DNA from: Paraphysomonas bandaiensis
Taxonomy: Eukaryota; Protista; Chrysophyceae
Length of the DNA stretch: 64,000 bases
Direction of reading: 5' to 3'
Assembly (NCBI GenBank): GCA_965644295.1
Contig: CBFFRP010000049.1
Span: 16,037-80,036 of the forward strand
Part shown: one piece after another, positions 4,303-54,547 of the stretch
Numbering within the stretch: the stretch's first letter is position 1
Layout of the letters: every line of letters starts with the position of its first letter
Notes under the pieces: model-generated
Seen by the model: only the letters and a program-made list of their open reading frames with translations
Told to the model about the DNA's origin: nothing
Database searches by the model: none
Position numbers and translations under genes: made by a program

Positions 4303-5026
4303 TTAATATAGCTGCATTTGCCTCTCTTGAGATTGCAAACGCTCCAACCGAATAGCCTGGTTTTGGATACAATGCATACGCATAAAGCTATCTTCACCAC
4401 TACTACTTACAGTAGTAGTATTAGTACCTATGCTCTGAGACGACGCGGCTACAGCCGTTGGGGGCACAATACTAGTAGGTGGAGGATAATAAGCAGGTGG
4501 AGGATCATCATTTTTTCTCATTAAAAGATCACGAAGTTCTGCTAGTCCGGACATCATTTCCTGACGAAGTTCAGCAACAGCAGCGGGAGGTATCAGATCT
4601 GCTTTCTGCTGGGATTCGACGACCCCGTCACCATCTTCATGTACAGCACTACTGTCCCTGCTCGTGCGCTTTCGCGGTACCTCCGAGTCGTCGTTGGATA
4701 TGTCGCCACGAATGTCGACGACATTCTTCTTCCCTTTGTACTTCTCCTACACCATTATACTACACAGTTAGTACAGTGTATATAGTAACAACGCACAACA
4801 ATAATCAGAACAATACCGCATATATACGTACGACGACCCCGTCACCATCTTCATGAACAGTACTACTTACCCTGCTGCTCGTGCGCTTTCGTGGTACCTC
4901 CGAGTCGTCGTTGGATATGCCGCCACGAATTTCGACGACATTCTTCCAGACCCGGGATAGCTCCAGACCCGGGCATGAATATGAGCAGTCAGTATGTTTT
5001 GGAGGGCGGTGGTGTATATGTTCCAT
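4303..5026 (-). pseudogene. Gene fragment with a tandemly duplicated exon-sized unit
   Basis: 4617-4730 and 4830-4946 are near-identical and encode KNVV.IRG.ISNDDSEVPRKRTS...HEDGDGVV, continuing into ORF 4303-4557. Confidence 0.4.
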
Positions 5027-23623: not shown

Positions 23624-24225
23624 CACGCTGTTTATCTTAGTATATAAGTAGGAGGGTGCACCCTCGCAGTACTAATTTGTTTGTCCTGTAATAAGCCGTA
23701 TGTTTGTAATATTACGTAGCACACTAGCGATTAGGCCTATATCGTTGCAACTCTACGTAGATATTCTGCCTAGCTATCCACAGTTGTGGCATTGATGATA
23801 CTAGATTGGAGTAAAGAGTAAAGTGGTGGTAGGTGGTGGAATATGCTACAACTCCACTGAAGCCAACCTTGCTCGAACCGTAAGGCTTAAACTTACACAG
23901 AGAGGATTCTATACAGAGGTGTTCATCTGTCAATCCTATACCTTCTATTGTCATTTGTCATATATAAGGAACAAGGAACTAAATTTACTTCCTTTACAAC
24001 TAGTTGTATTATAATGTAGAAGTAAGTGTACTAAGTTGTTACTAAGTGTGAATAGAAGTAAGTGTCACTAAGAACCCATTAAAACTATGAGTTATACCGT
24101 ATTATATATCGTATCATCCATCAGAACGAAGTAGCGGGTAGCGGTAATGTGGGTATATTGATATGGTTCTGTACGCGATGAAGTAAACCACTGGGGGAGG
24201 GTTGCATTTAATCACAACTAAGAAT

Positions 24226-24800
24226 TTACCCAAAGTAAATCGAATTTAACACTTATTTAGTTTATTAATCTTCTAGACAGGAATGCTCAGGCCTACAGTT
24301 GACTACCTAGAGCATTTGTTTGCTCAATAGTAGTCTACAAAAGTTCTGTAATTTGAGGCAATTGTGTAGCAGCACTTTCTTCTTCATTTGTCACTACCTC
24401 AGAACAGTACTGGAACTGCGTAAACAAAGAAGTATGTGGTAGTAGTGACACAATTTTCATCTACTGAAGCTAGCAACACATACAACTACTGATTTCTTTT
24501 CTGCTAAACCTTTCTAAATCTATGAGACTATAGATGTATATTGAAGTATATATCTGAGTATCTCATTTCTATACCAACCGCTTAATATGTTGTGTGTGAC
24601 GCCTATGATCAATTACGTTTCCTCAGGCATTTTCTTTTAAGCATTGGAAACTGTGTTCCTCGGGATTAGAAAACGTCACACACATTGAAAGTTTAGTCAA
24701 TTTTTCGTAACGGGTCAATCCGCTTCATCGTGATGACAAGGTACTTACCTTAATATCCAATCAAATTCTGGACTTTGAGCTCAGCTTTTCCATGTTCATA
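24226..24800 (+). repeat. Direct repeat A, copy 1 (~580 bp)
   Basis: Near-identical to 31663-32274 apart from small indels. Confidence 0.9.
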
Positions 24801-25009
24801 TCCCATACGTTATTTGCTATCTACCTACTGAACCCAACTAGCTACATCATTATCACACGGTATTCAGCGCTGAATATGCAGTGAGAACCCGAGTGGGGAA
24901 CCGCTGAACTGAGCAATGTGTACATAGATAGAAGTGCGCGGTCGCAATACGCAGCAGCACCCACTAGAGGGCCTCACGCAGTAATTAGTTACGCTGTCAG
25001 TATGGGGCA
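24801..25009 (+). mobile_element. ~207-bp MITE-like repeat B, left copy
   Basis: Inverted copy at 31390-31596; own short CCCATAC...GTATGGG ends; partial copy near 61523-61570. Confidence 0.75.
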
Positions 25010-25620
25010 GTATCCTGTTCACAGTATATATAAAATGGTGTCATTGTAATTGAACTGATATATACCAGAGGAAGATTGTGAAAAAAAGAAAAGGACTTGT
25101 CCCTTCTCTCAGGATCCAGTTTTTCCCATTGTGAGTATATGCTAAAGAAAGTTCTCTTATATGTGCCACTCCTTCATTTCCCCTGATTGCTTCTCCCTAG
25201 GACAGTTATCTGGAGCATTTTGTATTTCTGAAGAAATGTTTGCAGCTGGTGAGCTCGATTCAGACATCTTTATTGCGTTAACAGTTCTATTTAATAATAT
25301 CAATGAACTCTCCTACATATATAGAGCGATATGCATGTTTTCTTGTCCACGTGCGTTTTTTCGTGTCCGTGAGAATAGTCGATCCAGCAAAAAACTCCAG
25401 GCTTTTTTGATACATGTTGTTTTTTGACGAATATATTTCAGAGAAATAACGGAAAAAGGTCGATTTTTATGACGGATCGACTTATTCCCACAGATAGAGG
25501 AATGCTAATTTCTTAGCTATGGTGCTTTGTGTGTGACCCATCTCCCAAACAACGAAATTTCTCTGTCAAAATAAATTCCGACTCCACACATTTCCATAAA
25601 AACAGAAAAATTTATAATCC

Positions 25621-25772
25621 TACGTCTGGGCATCCTTTGTATGTTTTTGTTCCAAGATGCCTCTAATACTGAGACAATAATTGTCTGTATTCCAGTCGTA
25701 GTTGTATCTCAGTAATATAGAGTATATTTACTTCAATTAATTCCCGAAAAATAAGATGCAGACTGCCGATAC
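25621..25772 (+). mobile_element. M1 MITE copy 2
   Basis: Matches family M1; ends TGCCGATAC. Confidence 0.8.
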
Positions 25773-25947
25773 CTACCCATCCAGATCTTCGTACCTCCGG
25801 GCTCAGAATGGGGCAACATACACACATACATCGTAGATACATACATAGATAGCTAGATACGAATCAACTAAGAGAATAGTTAAAGCATCACAATCACATG
25901 CTGCTGTATATTCTACATTAATTTTTTAAACAGTTAAAAGTACCATC

Positions 25948-28900
25948 ATGTTAGCAATTAAACAATTCAAAAATTTTGTTCTATTAAGAGACAAGAATAT
26001 AAGAAAGAAACTTAAGGATGAAGTTTGGATGCTACATATGCTTGATAGTATTAGTCACTATCAATTGTTTGTTGTGGTAAATGTCCATGGTCGTACTGTT
26101 TTTAGAGACATCTGTGAGCACGCATCAGACAAAGTATTTGATAAAGTAATGCAACGACTTGAGAATAGGGTCCTAAACTTAGAGAATAACGAAGGCAGGA
26201 GTTTCTGGAGCCTACTCTTCGCTTCCTCTGCCTCAACAACCGAACTAAACCAGCGTTTATCGTCTCTCTTTACTAGACTGAGAAATGATGCTCAGAGTGC
26301 TTGTTGTCGTAAATATGATTGTGGAAACACCCTTCTGAATTTTATGTTAATTGACACTTCCCAGAAATGGAATGCAAAGACGGTTAAAATCATTGTTGCT
26401 GTACTTGGTTCTCGCGTGGAACGGACATTTTTGCAGAAAAATAATGATGGACAGGATTGCTTCGATATTTTAATTGCCCAGGCTACCTCAGTAGAAGAGG
26501 TTAATCAGTGTTTACAAACCGTTTTGACAGGTCTAGGGAAGAATGTACGCGGTGGTCTGATATGTGACAGTATGTTATTGCATCGAGTATTACTGAGTAC
26601 TAAGTGGAATGCAGAGACGGTTAGAATCATTGTTGCTGTACTTGGTTCTCGCGTGGAACGGACATTTTTGCAGAAAAATAATGATGGACAGGATTGCTTC
26701 GATATTTTAATTGCCCAGGCTACCTCAGTAGAAGAGGTTAATCAGTGTTTACAAACCGTTTTGACAGGTCTAGGGAAGAATGTACGCGGTGGTCTGATAT
26801 GTGACAGTATGTTATTGCATCGAGTATTACTGAGTACTAAGTGGAATGCAAAGACGGTTAAAATCATTGTTGCTGTACTTGGTTCTCACGTGGAACGGAC
26901 ATTTTTGCAGAAAAATAATGGTGGACAGGATTGCTTCGATATTTTAATTGCCCAGGCTACCTCAGTGAAACAGGTTAATCAGTGTTTACAAACATTCTTA
27001 ACAGCTATAGGAAGCGAAGCTGCTAGGGACTGTGCCCAAAAATTGCAGTATGGCCAGAATGCTAACACACTAATGCATAGAGTATTACTGAGTACTAAGT
27101 GGAATGCAAAGACGGTTAAAATCATTGTTGCTGTACTTGGTTCTCACGTGGAACGGACATTTTTGCAGAAAAATAATGGTGGACAGGATTGCTTCGATAT
27201 TTTAATTGCCCAGGCTTCCTCAGTGAAACAGGTTAATCAGTGTTTACAAACATTCTTAACAGCTATAGGAAGCGAAGCTGCTAGGGACTGTGCCCAAAAA
27301 TTGCAGTATGGCCAGAATGCTAACACACTAATGCATAGAGTATTACTGAGTACTAAGTGGAATCCAAAGACGGTTAAAATCATTGTTGCTGTACTTGGTT
27401 CTCACGTGGAACGGACATTTTTGCAGAAAAATAATGGTGGACAGGATTGCTTCGATATTTTAGTTGCTCAGGCTACCTCAGTAGAACAGGTTAATCAGCG
27501 TTTACAAGCCGTTTTGACAGGTCTAGGAAAAAATGTAGGCGATGGTCTGATATGTGACAGTATGTTATTGCATCGAGTATTCCGAAATACTTCCTGGAAA
27601 TGGAATGCAGAGACGGTTAGAATCATTGTTGCTAGATTCGGCTCTCAAGCAGCACAGAGATTGAGGGAATACTGTGATGGACAGAATTGTTTAGAGCTGT
27701 TATTAGCTAATGTCACCTCCTCAACGCAGCAGCTAAACCAAGTATTGCAAATGCTATTGACTAGTCTAGGTAGTCAAGCTTCTCGTCTTTGTGCTGCTCC
27801 ATGTAGATCCACGGCCAATAGCCTATTACATTTATCTTTGATCAACCTGTCGGGGAGGTGTAATGCCCACACGATTGAACTCATTCTATCTTCACTAGGC
27901 GACCAGGATCGTTACACATGCAATTTTCGAAATGCTGGAAGCAACTCAGGACTTGACCTCGCACTTTACAATCACAAGGGACACATAAATGAATATACTG
28001 TTTATTTGATTTTGAATATATTGTACGGAGTAACAGAAGATCAAATACGCGAAGGCGTTTCTCTAGACCAAGGCGCATACAACTATTTATTAAATAGTTT
28101 GTTAAAAGCAAGCAACTATTCAGGAGTGCGCTCTAACACACACAAGCCTGTTGTGTTGATATTAGCGCATGCGGCACTCAGTGTAGAAGTGCAAATTGAC
28201 TTTCAAGACAAGGTGCAACAGCTTATTTCATCTTTAACAAAAAGTATCGGGATATTGAAAGTTCTGGCAAACCTCTCATTAAATCCAACCAATAGAAGAA
28301 AAATGTTAGAGCCTGCCAACTTAAAAACAATTATTATTGCTGCCACAAATGCTGAGTTTGAGTTAGGTGGGGTACTTCTGTGGAGGTTGTTATATAGCAA
28401 TGACGTTGACCAACTGGAACCGGTGGAGCACGAAGGTCTCGGGCAGCTATCAAATTACTTCGGCAGTGATCTGAATACAGCAGAGTGGCAAACAAATTTC
28501 ATGTCGACGCAACAGCGTAATCGTCTTGTTATTAAGCAAGAACAGCTGACTGCTTTATGGAGTACTTATAAAAATAACAACACCTCACCGTGCTCAGCCG
28601 TTATATGGGCGCTCATGAGTTTGATTACAACAATACCAAACCTTTCTGTTTTCCACACGACCAACTTTATTGAAAAATTAAGTCAATGGTTACCACAACT
28701 GCCATTGCATGATGCAATTCTTGTTAGTGCAACGCTGAAGACGTTAGTAGATAGGGCAAGTTGTCGTGAAAAGCTAAGAGAAGCAGGCGCCGTAAGGACG
28801 TTTATGCCGCTAATAATAGCCACAAATAATGCCGTTCTTGAGGCGAATCTCTCTAAAATATTTGAAACGATGATGCAAGAGCAAAATAATCGATCAGATA

Positions 28901-30465
28901 TTTTAAGACAAAAAAATATTTTAGAGCTTTCTGAACTTTTTATGAAAAAAATTGCGGCTGAGAATTTCTCATTATCAGCGGCCCTGATGCATTTAGCGTA
29001 TAATGAAAAGATAGAGAGTATTCCTCAAGAAACACTCGCTAACCTTTTTATTGAAACAGAATGTCGATCCGCTTGTGCAACACTGGCTGCAGTGGGAGAA
29101 ATCACAAGTGAAGCGGTGATGGTGCTGACAGAAAACCAGATCATTTTATTGAAAAGCAAATTATCAAATACAACTGATCACCTAGAGCGCGCACGTATGC
29201 TTTGGTTATTTTCGGTTTTTGCAATGCATCCACAAAACCACGCTGTTATGGGCAGGGCCGGCTGCATCAGTTTATTGATGGACTATATTGCCACCGCGCC
29301 ACAATTTATTGAACTTGAGTTAGTCATCTTATTAAATTTGTCTTACCACGCAGAAAATAGACAAAAAATAGTTGATTTAAATGCGCGTTTGCAATTAACG
29401 CGTTTGCCACTGGAGGAAGATACCGAGGCTTCTCAGTTCCGCACAAAAATATTTGTCCACTTGGATAGTGCTCCTGCTGGGCCAAATAGACGAAATCGAC
29501 TGTTTGGTCAGAGAAGGCAGGGATTAAGATTACAACCTTTACGACGATTGTTTGGTGATAATAGAGTCCATCCAGGTGCTGGAGGTGATGAGCCAGATTT
29601 CTTTGATGAAAATGATGCTCGATTTACTCCTGTGTATATTCCTAAACAACTTTTGATCCTTGGTGGCGTTATTGGGGCTGGAACTTATGGCGTTGTATAT
29701 AAGGCTCAATGGATAAGAGACATAGGAGAAAAAACCGTTGCAGTAAAATGTTTTACGGATGTTCAAATTGGAGCAAACAAAGAAAAAAATATCAGAGACG
29801 AAGTAAAAAACATGCGCTTGCTAAGACACACTAATATCGTGACGTTTTTTGGTCTATCAAAAGCAGAGAACAACGATCCTATGATTGTGATGGAGCATGC
29901 TGAAAAAGGCTCACTTCGCCAATATCTTGAGGCTAACGATGTAGACAATGTGACTTGGTCATTACGCTTGAGAATTGCTTATGGGATTGCTAATGGACTA
30001 GCGTATATGCACGAACAACTGTTTGTACATCGTGATCTTAAGAGCCCAAATATTTTACTATCAAACCAACTAGAACCAAAACTATGTGATTTTGGTCTGA
30101 CAGAATTAAAGGTACGGCCGGGAACAACACACACTGATGAAGGTGGACAAACATTGATAGGTTCAGTGAGATGGATGGCGCCAGAACTGGTTCAAAAAAT
30201 TGTGCCACCGAGCACAAAAGTTGATATTTGGGCATTGGGGATGTTGTTTTTTGAGTTAGTTACACATGATCTGCCGTTTAACCATATCATTCCTAATGCA
30301 TTAGTAATAAAAGCGCTCGAAAGAAATGAAAAAGTGACTGTGCCAAGGTCATGTCAGCGCGATCAACCAGCATTTGCTAGCGTTATGTCTTCTTGCTGGG
30401 AAATAGACCCTCAAGCACGTCCTACTGCTGAAGAAGTAAAGACAAGATTGCAGGCGTGTTTATAA
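25948..30465 (+). CDS. Intronless 1505-aa protein: tandem helical (ankyrin-like) repeats, ARM-like region, C-terminal TKL-type protein kinase
   Basis: IGAGTYGVVY, VAVK, HRDLKSPN, DFG, GSVRWMAPE and DIWALG motifs; 237/258-bp tandem DNA repeats at 26368-27600. Confidence 0.92.
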   Translation: MLAIKQFKNFVLLRDKNIRKKLKDEVWMLHMLDSISHYQLFVVVNVHGRTVFRDICEHASDKVFDKVMQRLENRVLNLENNEGRSFWSLLFASSASTTELNQRLSSLFTRLRNDAQSACCRKYDCGNTLLNFMLIDTSQKWNAKTVKIIVAVLGSRVERTFLQKNNDGQDCFDILIAQATSVEEVNQCLQTVLTGLGKNVRGGLICDSMLLHRVLLSTKWNAETVRIIVAVLGSRVERTFLQKNNDGQDCFDILIAQATSVEEVNQCLQTVLTGLGKNVRGGLICDSMLLHRVLLSTKWNAKTVKIIVAVLGSHVERTFLQKNNGGQDCFDILIAQATSVKQVNQCLQTFLTAIGSEAARDCAQKLQYGQNANTLMHRVLLSTKWNAKTVKIIVAVLGSHVERTFLQKNNGGQDCFDILIAQASSVKQVNQCLQTFLTAIGSEAARDCAQKLQYGQNANTLMHRVLLSTKWNPKTVKIIVAVLGSHVERTFLQKNNGGQDCFDILVAQATSVEQVNQRLQAVLTGLGKNVGDGLICDSMLLHRVFRNTSWKWNAETVRIIVARFGSQAAQRLREYCDGQNCLELLLANVTSSTQQLNQVLQMLLTSLGSQASRLCAAPCRSTANSLLHLSLINLSGRCNAHTIELILSSLGDQDRYTCNFRNAGSNSGLDLALYNHKGHINEYTVYLILNILYGVTEDQIREGVSLDQGAYNYLLNSLLKASNYSGVRSNTHKPVVLILAHAALSVEVQIDFQDKVQQLISSLTKSIGILKVLANLSLNPTNRRKMLEPANLKTIIIAATNAEFELGGVLLWRLLYSNDVDQLEPVEHEGLGQLSNYFGSDLNTAEWQTNFMSTQQRNRLVIKQEQLTALWSTYKNNNTSPCSAVIWALMSLITTIPNLSVFHTTNFIEKLSQWLPQLPLHDAILVSATLKTLVDRASCREKLREAGAVRTFMPLIIATNNAVLEANLSKIFETMMQEQNNRSDILRQKNILELSELFMKKIAAENFSLSAALMHLAYNEKIESIPQETLANLFIETECRSACATLAAVGEITSEAVMVLTENQIILLKSKLSNTTDHLERARMLWLFSVFAMHPQNHAVMGRAGCISLLMDYIATAPQFIELELVILLNLSYHAENRQKIVDLNARLQLTRLPLEEDTEASQFRTKIFVHLDSAPAGPNRRNRLFGQRRQGLRLQPLRRLFGDNRVHPGAGGDEPDFFDENDARFTPVYIPKQLLILGGVIGAGTYGVVYKAQWIRDIGEKTVAVKCFTDVQIGANKEKNIRDEVKNMRLLRHTNIVTFFGLSKAENNDPMIVMEHAEKGSLRQYLEANDVDNVTWSLRLRIAYGIANGLAYMHEQLFVHRDLKSPNILLSNQLEPKLCDFGLTELKVRPGTTHTDEGGQTLIGSVRWMAPELVQKIVPPSTKVDIWALGMLFFELVTHDLPFNHIIPNALVIKALERNEKVTVPRSCQRDQPAFASVMSSCWEIDPQARPTAEEVKTRLQACL

Positions 30466-30649
30466 CAAAGGATTATTTATTTTAAGTCATATAACAGATG
30501 ACAACTGTAAAAAACTTGAGTGGTAAGCATTTTTATCTATCGATCCCTCTATCTTTTTCAATTTCTCTATCTCGTCGCGCCTGTATTTGTGCGTCAAGTT
30601 TTGGTGCTACTTTTTGCAGTTTATCAAAAGTATAATTTTTCTTAGAAAG

Positions 30650-31171
30650 GTAACCGCCACTTTAATACCATCTACCACTAATATTTTATAAGCTGAAAAT
30701 TTTCTACCATTTCAGGATGGAACGGGATCAGTTGAATTATCTCTCGCGATGGTCGTGAATAAATAACTTAAATACTCATGCGCATTCATTTGATTGGCTC
30801 AACAGGATTGTATCAGGCTATAGAAAGTCAATGCTTCTTGCATGCCAGATTCGGCGCCTAAGAATAGAAAGTTTTTCTGCCTAAGGCAAAATCGAATTCT
30901 CTGCTAAGTTATTTTCCACTTCGATAGGACCGCTAGTGATGCAAGCGTTTAACTTGGGCAAGTATTTTGTTGCACACGCTATCCCTTCACCAATGCCGCA
31001 TTTCGGCAGCACATGAACTAAGATTTTTTCACACCAGGCCTATTGGGCTTTTAGGCATTCTTCGAACTTGCATTCTCTTCTTAACGCCAAGCGCTGAATT
31101 GAATTCAGTTGCTGCGTTGCTACCAAGTGATCAGCTTTATAGAGTGTCTCAATCAGGCTCAGTGCTTGCTG
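30650..31171 (-). pseudogene. Decayed bacterial IS66-family transposase (TnpC C-terminus) with possible IR end
   Basis: Minus strand: QALSLIETLYKAD..QRLALRRE..*AWCEKILVHVLPKCGIGEGIA...GPIEVENNLAENSI/ALGRK/FLFLGAESG..ALTFYSLIQSC*ANQMNAHEYLSYLF; GTAACCGCC at 30650. Confidence 0.8.
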
Positions 31172-31389
31172 TATTAGAAACAGACATAATTAGTAGTTGA
31201 AATTGAGTATAATACTAAGATAAACACTCTAAGTAGATAATTATAGAATTATAAACAATATCACTTATCATTCAGCAGCTCATTGTATCTCTTCTACACC
31301 AACCGTTTCTAGTACGATCTTACATCGTCACTATCTTGTACAGTCAATATATTTTATTGTCATCACCACAATAGCTATCTTATTGTTAG

Positions 31390-31596
31390 TGCCCCATACT
31401 GACAGCGTAACTAATCACTGCGTGTGCGGCCCTCCAGTGGGTGCTGCTGAGTGCAGCGACCGCGCACCTCTACCTATGTACACATTGCTCAGTTCAGCGG
31501 TTCCCCACTCGGGTTCTCACTGCATATTCAGTGATACCGTGTGATAATGATGTAGCTAGTTGGGTTCAGTAGGTAGCTAGCAAAAAACGTATGGGA
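31390..31596 (-). mobile_element. Repeat B, right inverted copy
   Basis: Reverse complement of 24801-25009. Confidence 0.75.
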
Positions 31597-31662
31597 CTTA
31601 ATCAAGTATTAGTTAGGTACCCACCCGGCTCTACCTAAGTACGCGCTCAGAATGGAGCAAAC

Positions 31663-32274
31663 TTACCCAAATTAAATCAAATTTGACACTTATTTAGTTT
31701 ATTAATCTTCTAGACAGGAATGCTAAGGCAAAGGCCTACAGTTGACTACCTAGAGCATTTGTTTGCTCAATAGTGGTCTACAAAAGATCTGTAATTTGAG
31801 GCAATTGTGTAGCAGCACTTTCTTCTTCATTTGTCACTCTAATATCATGTGTATACCTTAACATAACTACCTCAGAACAGTACTGGAACTGCGTAAACAA
31901 AGAAGTATGTGGTAGTAGTGACACAATTTTCATCTACTGAAGCTAGCAATACATACAACTGCTGATTTCTTTCCTGCTAGACCTTCTAAATCTATGAGAC
32001 TATAGATGCATATTGAAGTATATATCTGAGTATCTCATTTCTATACCAACCGCTTAATATGTTGTGTGTGACGCCTATGATCAATTACGTTTCCTCAGGC
32101 ATTTTCTTTTAAGCATTGGAAACTGTGTTCCTCGGGATTAGAAAACGTCACACACATTGAAAGTTTAGTCAATTTTTCGTAACGGGTCAATCCGCTTCAT
32201 CATGATAACAAGGTACTTACCTTAATATCCAATATCAAATTCTGGACTTTGAGCTCAGCTTTTCCATGTTCATA
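31663..32274 (+). repeat. Direct repeat A, copy 2
   Basis: Matches 24226-24800. Confidence 0.9.
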
Positions 32275-32707
32275 ATACGTGCACTAAGACCAGCCGATAC
32301 ATACTCTGGGAGTAAACTGCACTATAATTGACACCATATGCATTCATCAGTACATATCTGATATGTTTATACTTAATTTATGACTATCTGAATGTCATAA
32401 TGAAGAATTCGCTATAGCAAGAAATTTCTGATTGGAATCAAGCAAGAGGTGTAACTGCTGTTGTGAAAAAGGTATTTTTATGTGGAGAATTCGATATAAA
32501 TCCCTATTTTGTTGTAATAACCATGTATTTGCTTTGACAAAGTATAAAAACTGGGTATTTTCTACCTTAGTATATATAACGTACTGCTGTATATATACTA
32601 CATGGCTCTGCTTGTTGTATGTATACTCTACATGCACAGCACTCTATACGTACATGTATAATATGTATAGTATACCGGTATATGTATATATGCATATGTA
32701 TATACTC

Positions 32708-32874
32708 ATACGTCTCGGCATCCTTTGTATATTTTTGTTCAAAGATGCCTCTAATATTGAGATAATAATTATCTGTATTCCAGTCGTAGTTGTATCTCAG
32801 TAATATAGAAATCTCAGTAAAATATTTGCTTCAATTTATTTTCGAAAAATATGATGCAGTCTGCCGATGCGTAT
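32708..32874 (+). mobile_element. M1 MITE copy 3
   Basis: ATACGTCTCGGCA...TGCCGATGCGTAT termini; M1 body. Confidence 0.8.
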
Positions 32875-46848: not shown

Positions 46849-48474
46849 TTACTCAACTACAATAATTTCAGTCCAATCACCGTGTTGAAGATTGCACATT
46901 GGCTCCATATCAATGAAGGATCCCACTAACGGTGGTGAAGTGGACCCATCAGACGAAGAGCAACATACACTGCCATATTCCTCAGCAAGTATGGAGTCGT
47001 TAGAAGGGTGTGAAGCATGGAGGTTGCAAGTAGATTCATCGCCCATATCATAGAGAGAAGGCCAAGGAGAATCGTCCACTATCACTGTCTCGTAGTACCC
47101 AAATCCATTAAACACAGTTGCCATGGACCGACCATAGGCCCCAATGTTCCCCCATTCAAGGTAGTCTCCTTCCTCAAGGCCAGCGGGCAGCAGCAATGTC
47201 TCCGGAAATTTGTCAGCACTGTCACAAGTCGGACCGTAGATGATATACTCCACCTGCTCAATGCCTACCTCTACCTCAACGCCAGACGCTTTCACGACGC
47301 GAACCGGGTATTTCCACTGTTCATGGACGACGTCATAAAGTGCACCATAAGAACCATCATTGAGATAGAGGGCAACAGCGTTTGTCCCCCTTTTAACACC
47401 TTCAATGCGAGTGAGTAGGCCCTCCCCTTCGGCCGAAAGACCTCTACCAGGTTCACACCAAAGGGTGGCCGTCGAAAATACATCCAGATCCTTAACGGCC
47501 TTGCTCACAGCTTCAATGTACTCCACCATCGGGGGAGGACAGTCCATGTCGTAGACAGACGGGAATCCACCACCAACATCAACAATGTCGATGGACACAT
47601 CTCCCAAAGCACGAATCTGAGACGCCACACTAGAGAGAGCCAATTCGTACGCCTGAGGTTTCATAGACTGACTCCCGACGTGGAAAGAAATACCCAACTT
47701 TGAGGCATACTTCCTTGCTTCGCGCAGAAGAGTTGGAGCTTGATCCGGATGCACTCCAAACTTTCCCGTTAACGGCAGTGAGGAACCATAATTAGACACC
47801 GCAAAGCGAACAATTAGAATCAAATCAGATGCAAAATTAGTTGCCTCTAATATTTTATCCAATTCTTCTTGTGAATCTAATACATAACGTCGCACACCAT
47901 ATTCATTATACACACGTGTGATCACACCACGATTTTTGATAGGATGCATAAATGCTAATTTTGCATTAGGGAATAATGAATATACAAGTTGAACTTCATA
48001 TAAACTTGCAACATCAAATCCACGAACTCCTCCTTTATAGAGTTCCCTTAATATATGAGGACTTGGGTTAGCCTTCACAGCATAGTACACTTCACCAGGA
48101 AAGTGTTGTGTAAACCAATCAGCATTCAATAGAACACGATGAGGTCTGTATATGTATTTTTGTTAGATGATAATATGTGTTTAGTTATGTATGTATTTAC
48201 CGGAAGAGGAATACAGGATTATATGGACATCTCTGTGTAACTAACTCATACGACGAGGAGACTCTCTCATTAACTGGTAAATCAGTAAGAACATGAGTTG
48301 ATTGACTGGCCAATGGCCTATGAATATATGTGAATATCTCCTCCAGCGACCTGGACTATAGATAACTATGTGTTTCAATAGATGTATGTGGTTAAGTGGA
48401 ATTATGAATGCAGTGAGCTCTTGTTGTCTATGGATTTGATCGATTCAACCCATATGGATATTGAAATCTTCCAT
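46849..48474 (-). CDS. ODC: Ornithine decarboxylase (fold-type III PLP; alphaproteobacterial-like); 5' exon uncertain
   Basis: YAVKANP, FDVAS, KFG, FHVGSQ, DVGGGFP, EPGR, GPTCDSAD and GAYG motifs; intron 48200-48146. Confidence 0.9.
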
Positions 48475-51410: not shown

Positions 51411-51556
51411 ATAAAAAGGGCGATTTTTTAGCTTGGTTAACATATTAAACCACAGATATATATGTATGTGCAGTAGTATATAGAGATATGTGTAGCTAGA
51501 TATTCCCACCTCATCTCATCTCATAATTCTATGTGTCTATACACTCTATTAGCATC

Positions 51557-54547
51557 ATGATATCAATGAATCAGTGTTCATATAAGTCGAGTATATCTGT
51601 TCTTAATGATGATGTTGTTCGTCTCATCATCTCTATGATCCCACACACGGCTCTTCTTCCAGTGATCATGACTTGTAAGAGACTTCACGATATCGTCTAC
51701 ACTGATAAGAGCAGAGAGAGACTTGAGTCACATGCATCTCACTACTGTATGACCAACTCAATGGTCTCATGGGCTCTGTCTGTGGGCTGCCCACACACCA
51801 AACTAATGAATACATGTGCACAATACGGCAGACTACAGCAGATGAAACACTTATACACACATACGTGTACACATACACATAATACAGAGTATGCTTCTAG
51901 TGAATTGGATGCACAACAGTGTCTTCGCTCACAGGACCCTCCATGTCCCTGGAATGAGTGGACTTGCAGTGCAGCTGCAGAAGGTGGACACATACATGTT
52001 CTGAATTGGCTTCGTTCACAGGACACTCCACGGTCATGGGATGTTTGGATTTGCATTGCTGCTGCCCGTAATGGACGTTTGGGTGTTCTGGAGTGGCTTC
52101 ATTTACAGGACCGTCCACGGTCATGGGATGCGCGGGTTTGCTTTGCTGCTGCTAAAGGTGGACACTTGGATGTTCTGAAATGGCTTCGTTCACAGGATCC
52201 ACCATGTCCATGGGATGTACGGACTTCTGATGCAGCTGCAGAAGGTGGACACTTACATGTTCTGAGGTGGCTTCGTTCACAATATCCACCATGTCCATGG
52301 GATGCAGGGACTTGTGATGCAGCTGCAAAAGGTGAACACTTACATGTTCTGAAATGGCTTCGTTCACAGGACCCCCCATGTTCATGGGATGCAGGGACTT
52401 GTCGTGTTGCTGTAGAAAATGGATGTTTGGGTGTCCTGAAGTGGCTTCGTTCACAGGATCCACCATGCCCATGGGATGCAAGGACTTGCAGTGCAGCTGC
52501 AGAAGGTGGACACTTTTATGTTCTGAAGTGGCTTCGTTCGCAGTATCCACCATGTCCATGGGATGCAGGGACTTGTTATGCTGCTGCAAAAGGTGGAAAC
52601 TTGGATATTCTGAAATGGCTTCGTTCACAGGACCCTCAATGTCTATGGGATTCAGAAATATGTACCGTTGCAGCAAAGGCTGGACGCTTGGATGTGCTGA
52701 GGTGGCTTCGTTCTCAAAGCCCACCAAGTCCGTGGAATGCTGGGACTTGCACTGTTGCTGCTGAGGAGGGACACTTGGATGTTCTGAAGTGGCTTTGTTC
52801 ACAGTGCCCTCCATGCCCATGGAATTCAGAAACTTGCTTTGCTGCAGCAGCAGATGGTGAACACTTGAATGTTCTCAGTTGGCTTCGCTCACAGGACGTT
52901 TCACTGTTATGTGAAGATTGGACTTGTTATGCTGCTGCAAAAGGTGGGCATTTGTGTATTCTGAGGTGGCTTCGCTCACAGGACCCTCCATGTCCGTGGG
53001 ACGAGGGGACTTGTGATGCAGCTGCAGAAGGGGGACACTTGGATATTCTAAAGTGGCTTCGTTCACAGAATCCTCCGTGCCCATGGGATGCAGGGGCTTC
53101 TGATGCAGCTGCACATAACGGACGTTTGGGTGTTCTGAAGTGGCTTCGTTCACAGGACCCACCATGTCCATGGGATGCAGGGACTTGTTATTCAGCTGCC
53201 AGAGGTGGTCACTTGGATGTTCTGAAGTGGCTTGGTTCACAGGATCCACCATGTCCATGGAATGTACGGACTTGCTTTGATGCTGCAGCAGATGGAGAAC
53301 GCTTTAATATTCTCAGTTGGCTTCGCTCACAGGACGTTTCACTGTTGTGTGAAGATTGGACTTCTTATGCTGCTGCCCGTAATGGACGTTTAGATGTTCT
53401 AAAATGGCTTCGTTCACAGGATCCACCATGTCCATGGGATGCAGGGACTTGTTATGCTGCTGCAAAAGGTGGAAACTTGGATGTTCTGAAATGGCTTCGT
53501 TCACAGGATCCACCATGTCCATGGGATGTACGGGCTTGTCGTGCCGCTACAGAAGAAGTGAACTTGAATGTTCTGAGGTGGCTTCGTTCACAGGATCCAC
53601 CATGTCCATGGGATGCAGAGACTTATCGTGCGGCTGCGAATGGTGGACATTTGTACGTTCTGAAGTGGCTTCGGTCACAGGATCCTCCATGCCCGTGGGA
53701 TGATTGGACTTGTACTGTTGCTGCAGAAGGTGGACACTTGGGTGTTCTGAAGTGGCTTCGTTCACAGGATCCACCATGTCCATGGAATTCAGAAACTTGC
53801 ATTGCAGCTGCAAGACGTGGACAATTGCATGTTCTGAAGTGGCTTCGGTCAGAGGATCCACCGTGTCCATGGAATGAATGGACTTGCATTGCAGCTGTTA
53901 AAGATGGGCACTTGGATGTTCTGGATTGGCTTCGGTCACAAGATCCTCCATGCCCATGGGATTCAGAAGCTTGCTTTTCTGCTGCAGCAGATGGTGAACA
54001 CTTGAATGTTCTTAGTTGGTTTCACTTGCATGATTTTCCACTGCCACATTAGGATTGCACTTGTTATGCTGCTGCAAATGGTGGACACTTGGGTGTTCTG
54101 AGGTGGCTTCGTTCACAGGATCCACCATGTCCGTGGGATGTACGGGCTTGCCGTGCAGCTGTGAATAGTGGACCTTTGTACGTTCTGAAGTGGCTTCGGT
54201 CACAGGATCCTCCATGCCCGTGGGATGATTGGACTTGTACCGTTGTTGCAGAAGGTGGACACTTGGGTGTTCTGAGGTGGCTTCGTTCACAGGATCCACC
54301 ATGTCCGTGGGATGTACGGGCTTGCCGTGCAGCTGTGAATAGTGGACCTTTGTACGTTCTGAAGTGGCTTCGGTCACAGGATCCTCCATGCCCGTGGGAT
54401 GATTGGACTTGTACCGTTGTTGCAGAAGGTGGACACTTGGGTGTTCTGAAGTGGCTTAGTTTATATGACCCTCCATGTCCATGGAATTCAAAAACTTGCA
54501 TTGCCGCTGCAAAAGATGGATGTGTATTAATTCAAAATCTGGAATAA
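51557..54547 (+). CDS. F-box-like N-terminus plus ~30 27-aa ankyrin-like WLRSQDPPCPWD repeats; in-frame TAG at 54050-54052
   Basis: SVLNDDVVRLIISMI...VIMTCKRLHDI; 81-bp tandem repeats; reading frame continues unchanged after the TAG to 54547. Confidence 0.85.

Follow-up and report, generated by a model that had tools for sequence, protein, structure and literature searches.

A decayed IS66 transposase gene beside an expressed kinase gene of bacterial affinity in Paraphysomonas: a possible capture of bacterial DNA by a protist

Phagotrophic protists are known to acquire genes from bacteria. Claims of bacteria-to-eukaryote transfer usually rest on a tree alone and are often disputed, and linked insertion sequence (IS) DNA adds physical evidence to such a claim. 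Among the prokaryotic IS families, only IS607 turned up when 430 eukaryote genomes were surveyed (Gilbert and Cordaux, 2013; PMC3673617). Here we analyse a 64,000-nt stretch of the genome of Paraphysomonas bandaiensis (the window: contig 49, positions 16037-80036, of a 62.6-Mb genome in 669 contigs), in which the remains of tnpC, the transposase gene of an IS66 element, lie next to an expressed gene for a protein kinase that groups with kinases of bacteria. Positions below are those of the window, and the features are listed in Table 1. Paraphysomonas is a colourless, bacterivorous chrysophyte, a marine flagellate among the stramenopiles. We regard the locus as a good case, though an unproven one, of bacterial DNA captured by a protist, for which no donor was found; the probability that the kinase gene and the IS66 copy passed together from a bacterium into the Paraphysomonas nucleus is, in our estimate, about one half.

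A preliminary description of this DNA, made by eye from the sequence, had recognized an IS66 TnpC on the minus strand at about 30720-31171, interrupted by two stop codons and two frameshifts. The identity and the place of the relic both proved right. The profile PF03050 matches it with 35.3 bits (cut-off 23.1; E 2.2e-7; profile positions 173-266 of 284) across two TAG stops, and a six-frame search of the whole genome with the same profile returned this single match, at 30881-31171 on the minus strand. Searched piece by piece, the broken transposase gives fragments that singly stay under the cut-off (20.9, 16 and 18.4 bits), and the pieces between the stops are collinear with the family models (NF033517 positions 288-337 and 340-369 of 387; IS66_C positions 8-28 of 39). 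Two full TnpC proteins, used as tblastn queries, align over residues 357/365-513 of about 525 to 31174-30727 (E 7e-14 and 2e-11; 29-33% identity), and an NNLAEN stretch of the relic falls on the NNxAE(R/N) motif of the reference transposases. Both stops are there (31040-31042 and 30799-30801), and a single frame change, near 30884-30891, was counted in place of the two described earlier; the relic's own stop lies at 30712-30714.

What survives begins at about TnpC residue 357, and since the part bearing both catalytic D residues is missing, the DDE core is incomplete. The copy is best called a relic rather than an intact member of the family. TnpA and TnpB from two elements, searched by tblastn against the whole window, gave best E values of 0.03-0.05 at unrelated places, and the rest of the element, looked for in the window beyond the host repeats that now flank the locus, was not found. 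Plasmids (by tblastn), the IS66 copies of five related bacterial genomes and a metagenome scan yielded no donor, all matches having 27-43% identity; those in metagenomes were Bacteroides-type IS66 on gut-metagenome contigs, some of them from human-gut samples, and were set aside. Peptide patterns from the relic run over the reference bacterial genomes, of which one per species was searched, found no match. That so few changes disable the relic, namely two stops and a single frameshift over about 155 codons, suggests that it arrived fairly recently and from an unsampled lineage.

The relic ends 184 nt from the stop codon of the kinase gene. That this proximity is an artefact, with a contaminating bacterial contig joined to protist DNA during assembly, was a danger raised in the preliminary description, and we find it scarcely credible. 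Short-read contigs were assembled separately from three runs of different studies, of which one is labelled DNA, another is probably DNA and the third is of unknown kind. They cover 28800-31121, 28800-31171 and 28800-31335 with no difference from the window, and one continues into a host repeat. In two of these runs the depth of the spanning contig is that of unique neighbouring contigs (99 vs 92-102; 38 vs 39-42). As contigs of three runs cross the kinase/IS66 junction, two of them at the depth of their neighbours, the join is not chimeric. The stretch occurs whole or in part in 20 runs from 11 studies; these runs bear three organism labels, and under one of the labels only 68% of the sequence words are present. 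Moreover, host-specific repeats lie on both sides of it, poly(A) metatranscriptomes hold both the kinase and the relic, and a spliced transcript contig extends from a leader to 31219.

This transcript contig (L002) also documents expression, for which the preliminary description had looked to poly(A) RNA. Its positions 1-491 correspond to 25910-26400 and its positions 4382-4911 to 30690-31219, both at 100% identity, and it comprises a 38-nt leader, the coding sequence (CDS) with its repeats collapsed, and a 3' untranslated region (UTR) that takes in the entire IS66 relic in antisense orientation. The protein derived from it (P0001) is 100% identical over residues 640-1505, and poly(A) metatranscriptome contigs match parts of the kinase gene and of the relic, likewise at 100% identity. 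From the intact 4.5-kb frame, the retained catalytic residues, poly(A) transcripts from cultures and from the sea, and ongoing repeat expansion, we argue that the kinase gene is in use.

Within its 3' UTR the transcript contig lacks 43 nt of the genomic sequence, its position 4384 corresponding to 30649 and its position 4385 to 30693. The gap has four equivalent placements, one of which is a canonical GT..AG intron. All DNA contigs keep the 43 nt, and elsewhere the transcript contig agrees fully or almost fully with the genome; a spliced intron is therefore a better explanation of the gap than a deletion in another strain. One poly(A) metatranscriptome contig keeps the 43 nt, through either intron retention or DNA carried along. 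The intron appears in spliced and unspliced form in RNA assemblies, and it lies 184 nt downstream of the kinase stop codon; an intron so far past the stop marks an mRNA for nonsense-mediated decay in many eukaryotes.

The start of this intron is also the place where an IS66 element might be expected to end. The preliminary description took GTAACCGCC, at 30650-30658 and 62 nt past the relic stop, for the end of the element. It does fit the terminal repeats of reference IS66 (two elements), which read (T)GTAAGC about 100 nt past the tnpC stop, and it is plausible, from this one end, that GTAACCGCC is the outer end of an IS66 terminal inverted repeat. However, its first two bases are the GT of the intron donor, and given this role in splicing it is not assignable to an IS terminal repeat alone. 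The candidate repeat, GTAACCGCCAC starting at 30650, is the sole end present, and the same bases serve as the splice donor; the opposite end, against which an 8-bp target-site duplication would be read, is gone. A hairpin at 30591-30607, considered as a bacterial signal, was rejected as being at chance level.

The kinase domain at the C-terminus, the one strong Pfam domain of the predicted protein, matches PF07714 with 183.5 bits (E 6.1e-54) and PF00069 with 177.4 bits (E 4.8e-52), both over cut-off, and its motifs are complete (G-loop GAGTYGVV, VAVK, HRDLKSPN, DFG and APE). The gene is single-copy in the genome. Residues 1-640 have no homologue at E <= 0.01 in protein collections, residues 640-1228 have none there either, and neither part has one in the host genome, where the middle part is also without a paralogue. 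Two of the 258-nt copies in the tandem array are 99% identical, which supports the repeat expansion proposed in the preliminary description and points to a recent one. For residues 640-1228 the armadillo (ARM) profile Arm_2 scores 15.8 bits, under its cut-off of 20.4; language-model look-alikes are ARM/KAP clusters (0.80-0.82, a lead only); and a single-sequence AlphaFold2 model is all-helical with a predicted local distance difference test score (pLDDT) of 39.8, too poor for a fold search. The region falls short of membership in the armadillo family on these measures, and 'ARM-like' is best taken here as a description. The protein looks like a soluble cytoplasmic signalling kinase, in which the long helical repeat region may recruit partners or substrates.

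An exhaustive HMMER search with the kinase domain across 1.84 billion representatives found no relative with more than 42% identity in any other organism. The best per-domain matches were P0345 (207.6 bits, 41-42% identity) and P0383 (195.8 bits), and the best named eukaryote reached 161 bits. P0345 is a WD40-kinase encoded directly after homologues of dotB, dotC and dotD together with icmT, icmS and icmQ, on a contig that also carries mnmE, yidC and rnpA; P0383 sits with a second kinase gene and a gene for a U-box protein. In the reference bacteria the best matches came from a metagenome-assembled genome (MAG) of a pond member of the Legionellales (41%, 212 bits) and from gammaproteobacterial, alphaproteobacterial and Parachlamydiaceae MAGs, and the gammaproteobacterial kinase adjoins VirB10/B11/D4. 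The loci of these relatives are bacterial, with a coding density of 0.83-0.91 and with sucCD, VirB10/B11/D4, RND efflux and Fic genes. In one of the bacterial loci (L017) an ARM-like region precedes the kinase, in the same order as in the window protein. Across loci L013 (an ENA contig), L014, L016 and L023 the kinases stand beside such genes of secretion-system or effector type (dotB/C/D with icmT/S/Q, VirB10/B11/D4, a U-box protein, a Fic protein) and are fused to WD40, ARM-like or ankyrin repeats.

By comparison, the host genome's own best kinases have 30-37% identity and at most 100 bits. In an unrooted maximum-likelihood tree of 40 rows (LG+C20 with posterior mean site frequencies), the window kinase and seven bacterial kinases form a clade with 99% ultrafast bootstrap (UFBoot) and 92% SH-aLRT support, a position on which a quick tree and this more careful one agree. 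A constraint that joins the window kinase to five host kinases is rejected by the approximately unbiased test (p-AU 0.013). The next sister (93/92) is a clade made up wholly of fungal kinases from Actinomortierella. This clade has seven members (P0002, P0245, P0257, P0258, P0264, P0266 and P0278), all from that one fungal genus, and it may be the trace of another exchange, between fungi and bacteria. As far as the sequences tell, the tree says that the window kinase is not of the host type and is closest to kinases of intracellular bacteria; it is unrooted and gives no direction. The bacterial origin proposed for the kinase in the preliminary description is thus upheld in part: the domain groups with Legionellales-like and chlamydial kinases and not with those of its host, whereas neither the direction of transfer nor a bacterial source for the other 1228 residues was shown.

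Two sets of observations lead us to favour a joint transfer. First, the IS66 relic, of which the genome has no other, stands 184 nt away from the one gene that shows affinity to bacterial kinases. Second, this gene has no orthologue or paralogue, its host eats bacteria, and the related bacteria carry IS66 (four of the five genomes searched) and pair their kinases with repeat scaffolds. Endosymbiosis, which the preliminary description had invoked, is not called for, as no endosymbiont donor was found and, the host being bacterivorous, prey or a pathogen would serve as well.

A number of results weigh against this favoured reading. Identity to the bacterial kinases is only 41-43%, and the seven bacteria form a group of their own (99/88) to which the window kinase is sister, rather than nested within it. 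A constraint that unites the window kinase with the Actinomortierella clade is not rejected (p-AU 0.29). Residues 1-1228 have no tblastn match at E <= 1 in the bacterial loci L013-L035 and no homologue in protein collections either. Neither base composition (GC) nor GC at third codon positions (GC3, 0.35) sets the gene apart from host genes, although the preliminary description had looked to composition as a sign of origin, and promoter-like and terminator-like sites near the gene occur at chance level, with no bacterial signal in the spacer above chance. The IS66 copies of the kinase-bearing bacteria resemble the relic no more than any other IS66 does (27-43% identity), and the upstream junction to host DNA is supported by the assembly alone. 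Finally, such kinases are known to pass from hosts into intracellular bacteria, and the arrow of transfer could therefore run the opposite way.

Several of these results would be expected if the kinase were a native, fast-evolving and lineage-specific Paraphysomonas gene, or one from another eukaryote, if the bacteria had obtained theirs from such protists, and if the IS66 fragment had integrated independently. The branching of the window kinase outside the bacterial group, the fungal sister group that is not rejected, the 1228 non-kinase residues without bacterial homologue and the host-like composition all fit such a history. The region has furthermore received several insertions of host repeats, as an insertion-tolerant, repeat-rich place would, and an ornithine decarboxylase gene of apparently bacterial type lies 16 kb off, so foreign DNA may not be rare in this genome. 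However, the only IS66 relic in 62.6 Mb would then have had to land by chance 184 nt from the one gene whose kinase domain comes closest to bacterial kinases of effector type, no orthologue or close paralogue of that kinase is found in the host genome or in any sampled eukaryote, and grouping with the host kinases is rejected. On balance we judge this independent arrival to be rather unlikely.

If kinase gene and IS66 did travel together, one piece of DNA would have entered the Paraphysomonas nucleus from a protist-associated bacterium with the lifestyle of Legionellales or Chlamydiae, taken up as prey, pathogen or symbiont. On this piece an IS66 would have stood close downstream of a eukaryote-like kinase gene. 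The transposase would then have decayed and lost its 5' part where host repeats resembling long terminal repeats (LTRs) now lie, and the kinase gene would have stayed under selection, gained host transcription and expanded its N-terminal repeats. The present mRNA would read through the relic, the end of the IS (GTAAC...) acting as splice donor. A more specific history is possible, and we put it forward tentatively: a 'boomerang', in which a eukaryote-type kinase of Legionellales-like bacteria was handed back to a chrysophyte along with IS66, and the terminal inverted repeat of the IS became a splice donor in the 3' UTR.

Host repeats lie on either side of the locus, in line with the host transposable element that the preliminary description had placed upstream of the gene. 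The relic yields to repeat C at 31172-31184, where read depth climbs from about 100 to more than 1000. Repeat C has at least 39 further copies in the genome (76-86% identity), many of them in pairs about 5.2 kb apart, and repeat B has at least 40 (90-97% identity), several in direct pairs 2-4 kb apart; such pairing (2-5 kb) would resemble the LTRs of small retroelements. The two copies of direct repeat A (about 600 nt; 91% identity, with indels of 30 and 6 nt) bracket the entire kinase/IS66 cassette, in the order A-B ... B'-A, and may have arisen either as a long target duplication at insertion or by local rearrangement. That they belong to a larger tandem duplication was considered and rejected, only a dispersed repeat being common to the sequences beyond them. 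A third dispersed family lies at 25613-25770 and 32701-32868, with four further copies within the window. Open stretches of at least 40 residues in 24978-25950, 30466-30720 and 32275-32705 were read by eye, with no library search, and no gene relics were seen.

Table 1. Features of the kinase/IS66 locus, in order of window position.
Feature	Position	Strand	Description
Direct repeat A, left copy	24223-24800	+	Only two copies in genome
Repeat B	24801-25012	+	Second high-copy LTR-like host repeat; 936 nt upstream of start codon
Transcript contig L002	25910-31219	+	JGI sample 3300017004; 4911 nt; placed by blastn
Kinase CDS	25948-30465	+	1505 aa; open, intact, unspliced in coding part; orphan N-terminus, tandem repeats, helical ARM-like middle, C-terminal kinase
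Tandem array	26368-27633	+	5.1 copies, 258-nt period, units of 79 or 86 aa; Tandem Repeats Finder score 1655, 89% matches
Helical ARM-like region	27865-29631	+	Residues 640-1228; all-helical; no detectable homologue
TKL-type kinase domain	29662-30450	+	Residues 1239-1501; PF07714 and PF00069
3'-UTR intron	30650-30692	+	43 nt, GT..AG; absent from transcript contig L002
Decayed IS66 TnpC, C-terminal third	30715-31174	-	Profile and tblastn; N-terminal two thirds, tnpA and tnpB absent
Repeat C	31184-31386		High-copy LTR-like host repeat; abuts truncated end of relic
Repeat B', inverted copy of B	31387-31596	-	91% match to B over 214 nt
Direct repeat A, right copy	31660-32274	+	Locus-specific

The bracketing by A-B ... 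B'-A would also suit an indirect route, in which the kinase gene and the IS66 fragment were both brought in by an intermediate carrier, for instance a giant virus or some other mobile element; giant viruses of protists do often carry kinases and bacterial-type transposases. We nevertheless think such a carrier improbable. The best kinases on viral contigs are partial and have only 25-32% identity, none of the viral hallmark genes turned up in 24-33 kb, and the surrounding repeats are either ordinary high-copy host families (B and C) or confined to the locus (A).

Elsewhere the window has genes of an ordinary eukaryotic kind, for a cyclin, a GT47 protein, a cytochrome b5 reductase-like protein and an ankyrin protein as well as copia elements. 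The ornithine decarboxylase gene mentioned above (46852-48156, minus strand) encodes a protein with 99-100% identity to one of transcriptome MMETSP1103, which is labelled Paraphysomonas. Among named sequences the nearest are alphaproteobacterial (Hyphomonas, 52-58% identity), closer matches (63-70%) being unnamed environmental sequences, and by this measure it may be a second gene of bacterial type, 16 kb from the kinase gene. The preliminary description had contrasted an intronless kinase frame with intron-rich neighbours. The frame is indeed open and unspliced in its coding part, but the neighbours do not bear out the contrast: the ornithine decarboxylase gene aligns contiguously with its transcript-derived protein and is hence intronless, and many kinases of the host genome occupy long open frames. 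As intronless genes are common in this genome, the missing introns are a weak argument for foreign origin. The ankyrin-repeat open reading frames at 51533-54052 and 54089-54547 (plus strand) are one frame with a single TAG, at 54050-54052, within a repeat. An intron at the gap, at 54050, was considered and rejected in favour of this in-frame TAG, which could reflect a pseudogene, a sequencing error or read-through.

The relic extends the short list of prokaryotic IS families in eukaryotes and, on the boomerang reading, would be the first footprint of IS66 to be described from the nuclear genome of a eukaryote. A bacterivorous host matches the 'you are what you eat' route of transfer. The donor lineage would be unexpected: the bacterial kin of the kinase belong to lineages known for taking genes from their hosts, and the case bears on whether gene traffic between hosts and bacteria runs both ways. 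If, in addition, the intron reading holds, the locus offers an example of foreign DNA fitted into eukaryotic gene expression.

Four described systems come closest to the locus. The relic resembles members of the IS66 family, such as ISBthe6 of Bacteroides or the copy on a Vibrio plasmid, in the collinearity of its C-terminal 150 residues, including NNxAE and the IS66_C tail, and in a candidate GTAA-type end shortly past the stop. It differs from them in being reduced to the final third of tnpC, interrupted by two stops and one frameshift, with no tnpA, tnpB or second terminal repeat, in lying in a eukaryotic nuclear genome, and in having at most 43% identity to any known copy. The kinase shares with the eukaryote-like Ser/Thr kinases of Legionellales and Chlamydiae a place in the 99/92 clade, 41-43% identity and the pairing of a kinase with repeats (WD40, ARM-like or ANK in the bacteria). 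Unlike theirs, its gene resides in a eukaryote, which expresses it; the protein is much longer (1505 aa) and unrelated in its non-kinase parts, and it has neither a secretion signal nor a secretion system. The multi-kinase proteins of Actinomortierella (Mortierellaceae) form the next sister clade, with 37-40% identity; they are, however, a multi-copy family of fungi whose members frequently have several kinase domains or Sel1 repeats, and they share nothing with the window protein outside the kinase domain. Finally, the IS607-like sequences of eukaryotes are likewise bacterial IS DNA in protist nuclear genomes, flanked by host sequence and checked for contamination (PMC3673617). In contrast to those sequences, the window holds a different family, IS66, as a single dead fragment that was neither amplified nor domesticated, and this fragment stands beside a gene that may have arrived with it.

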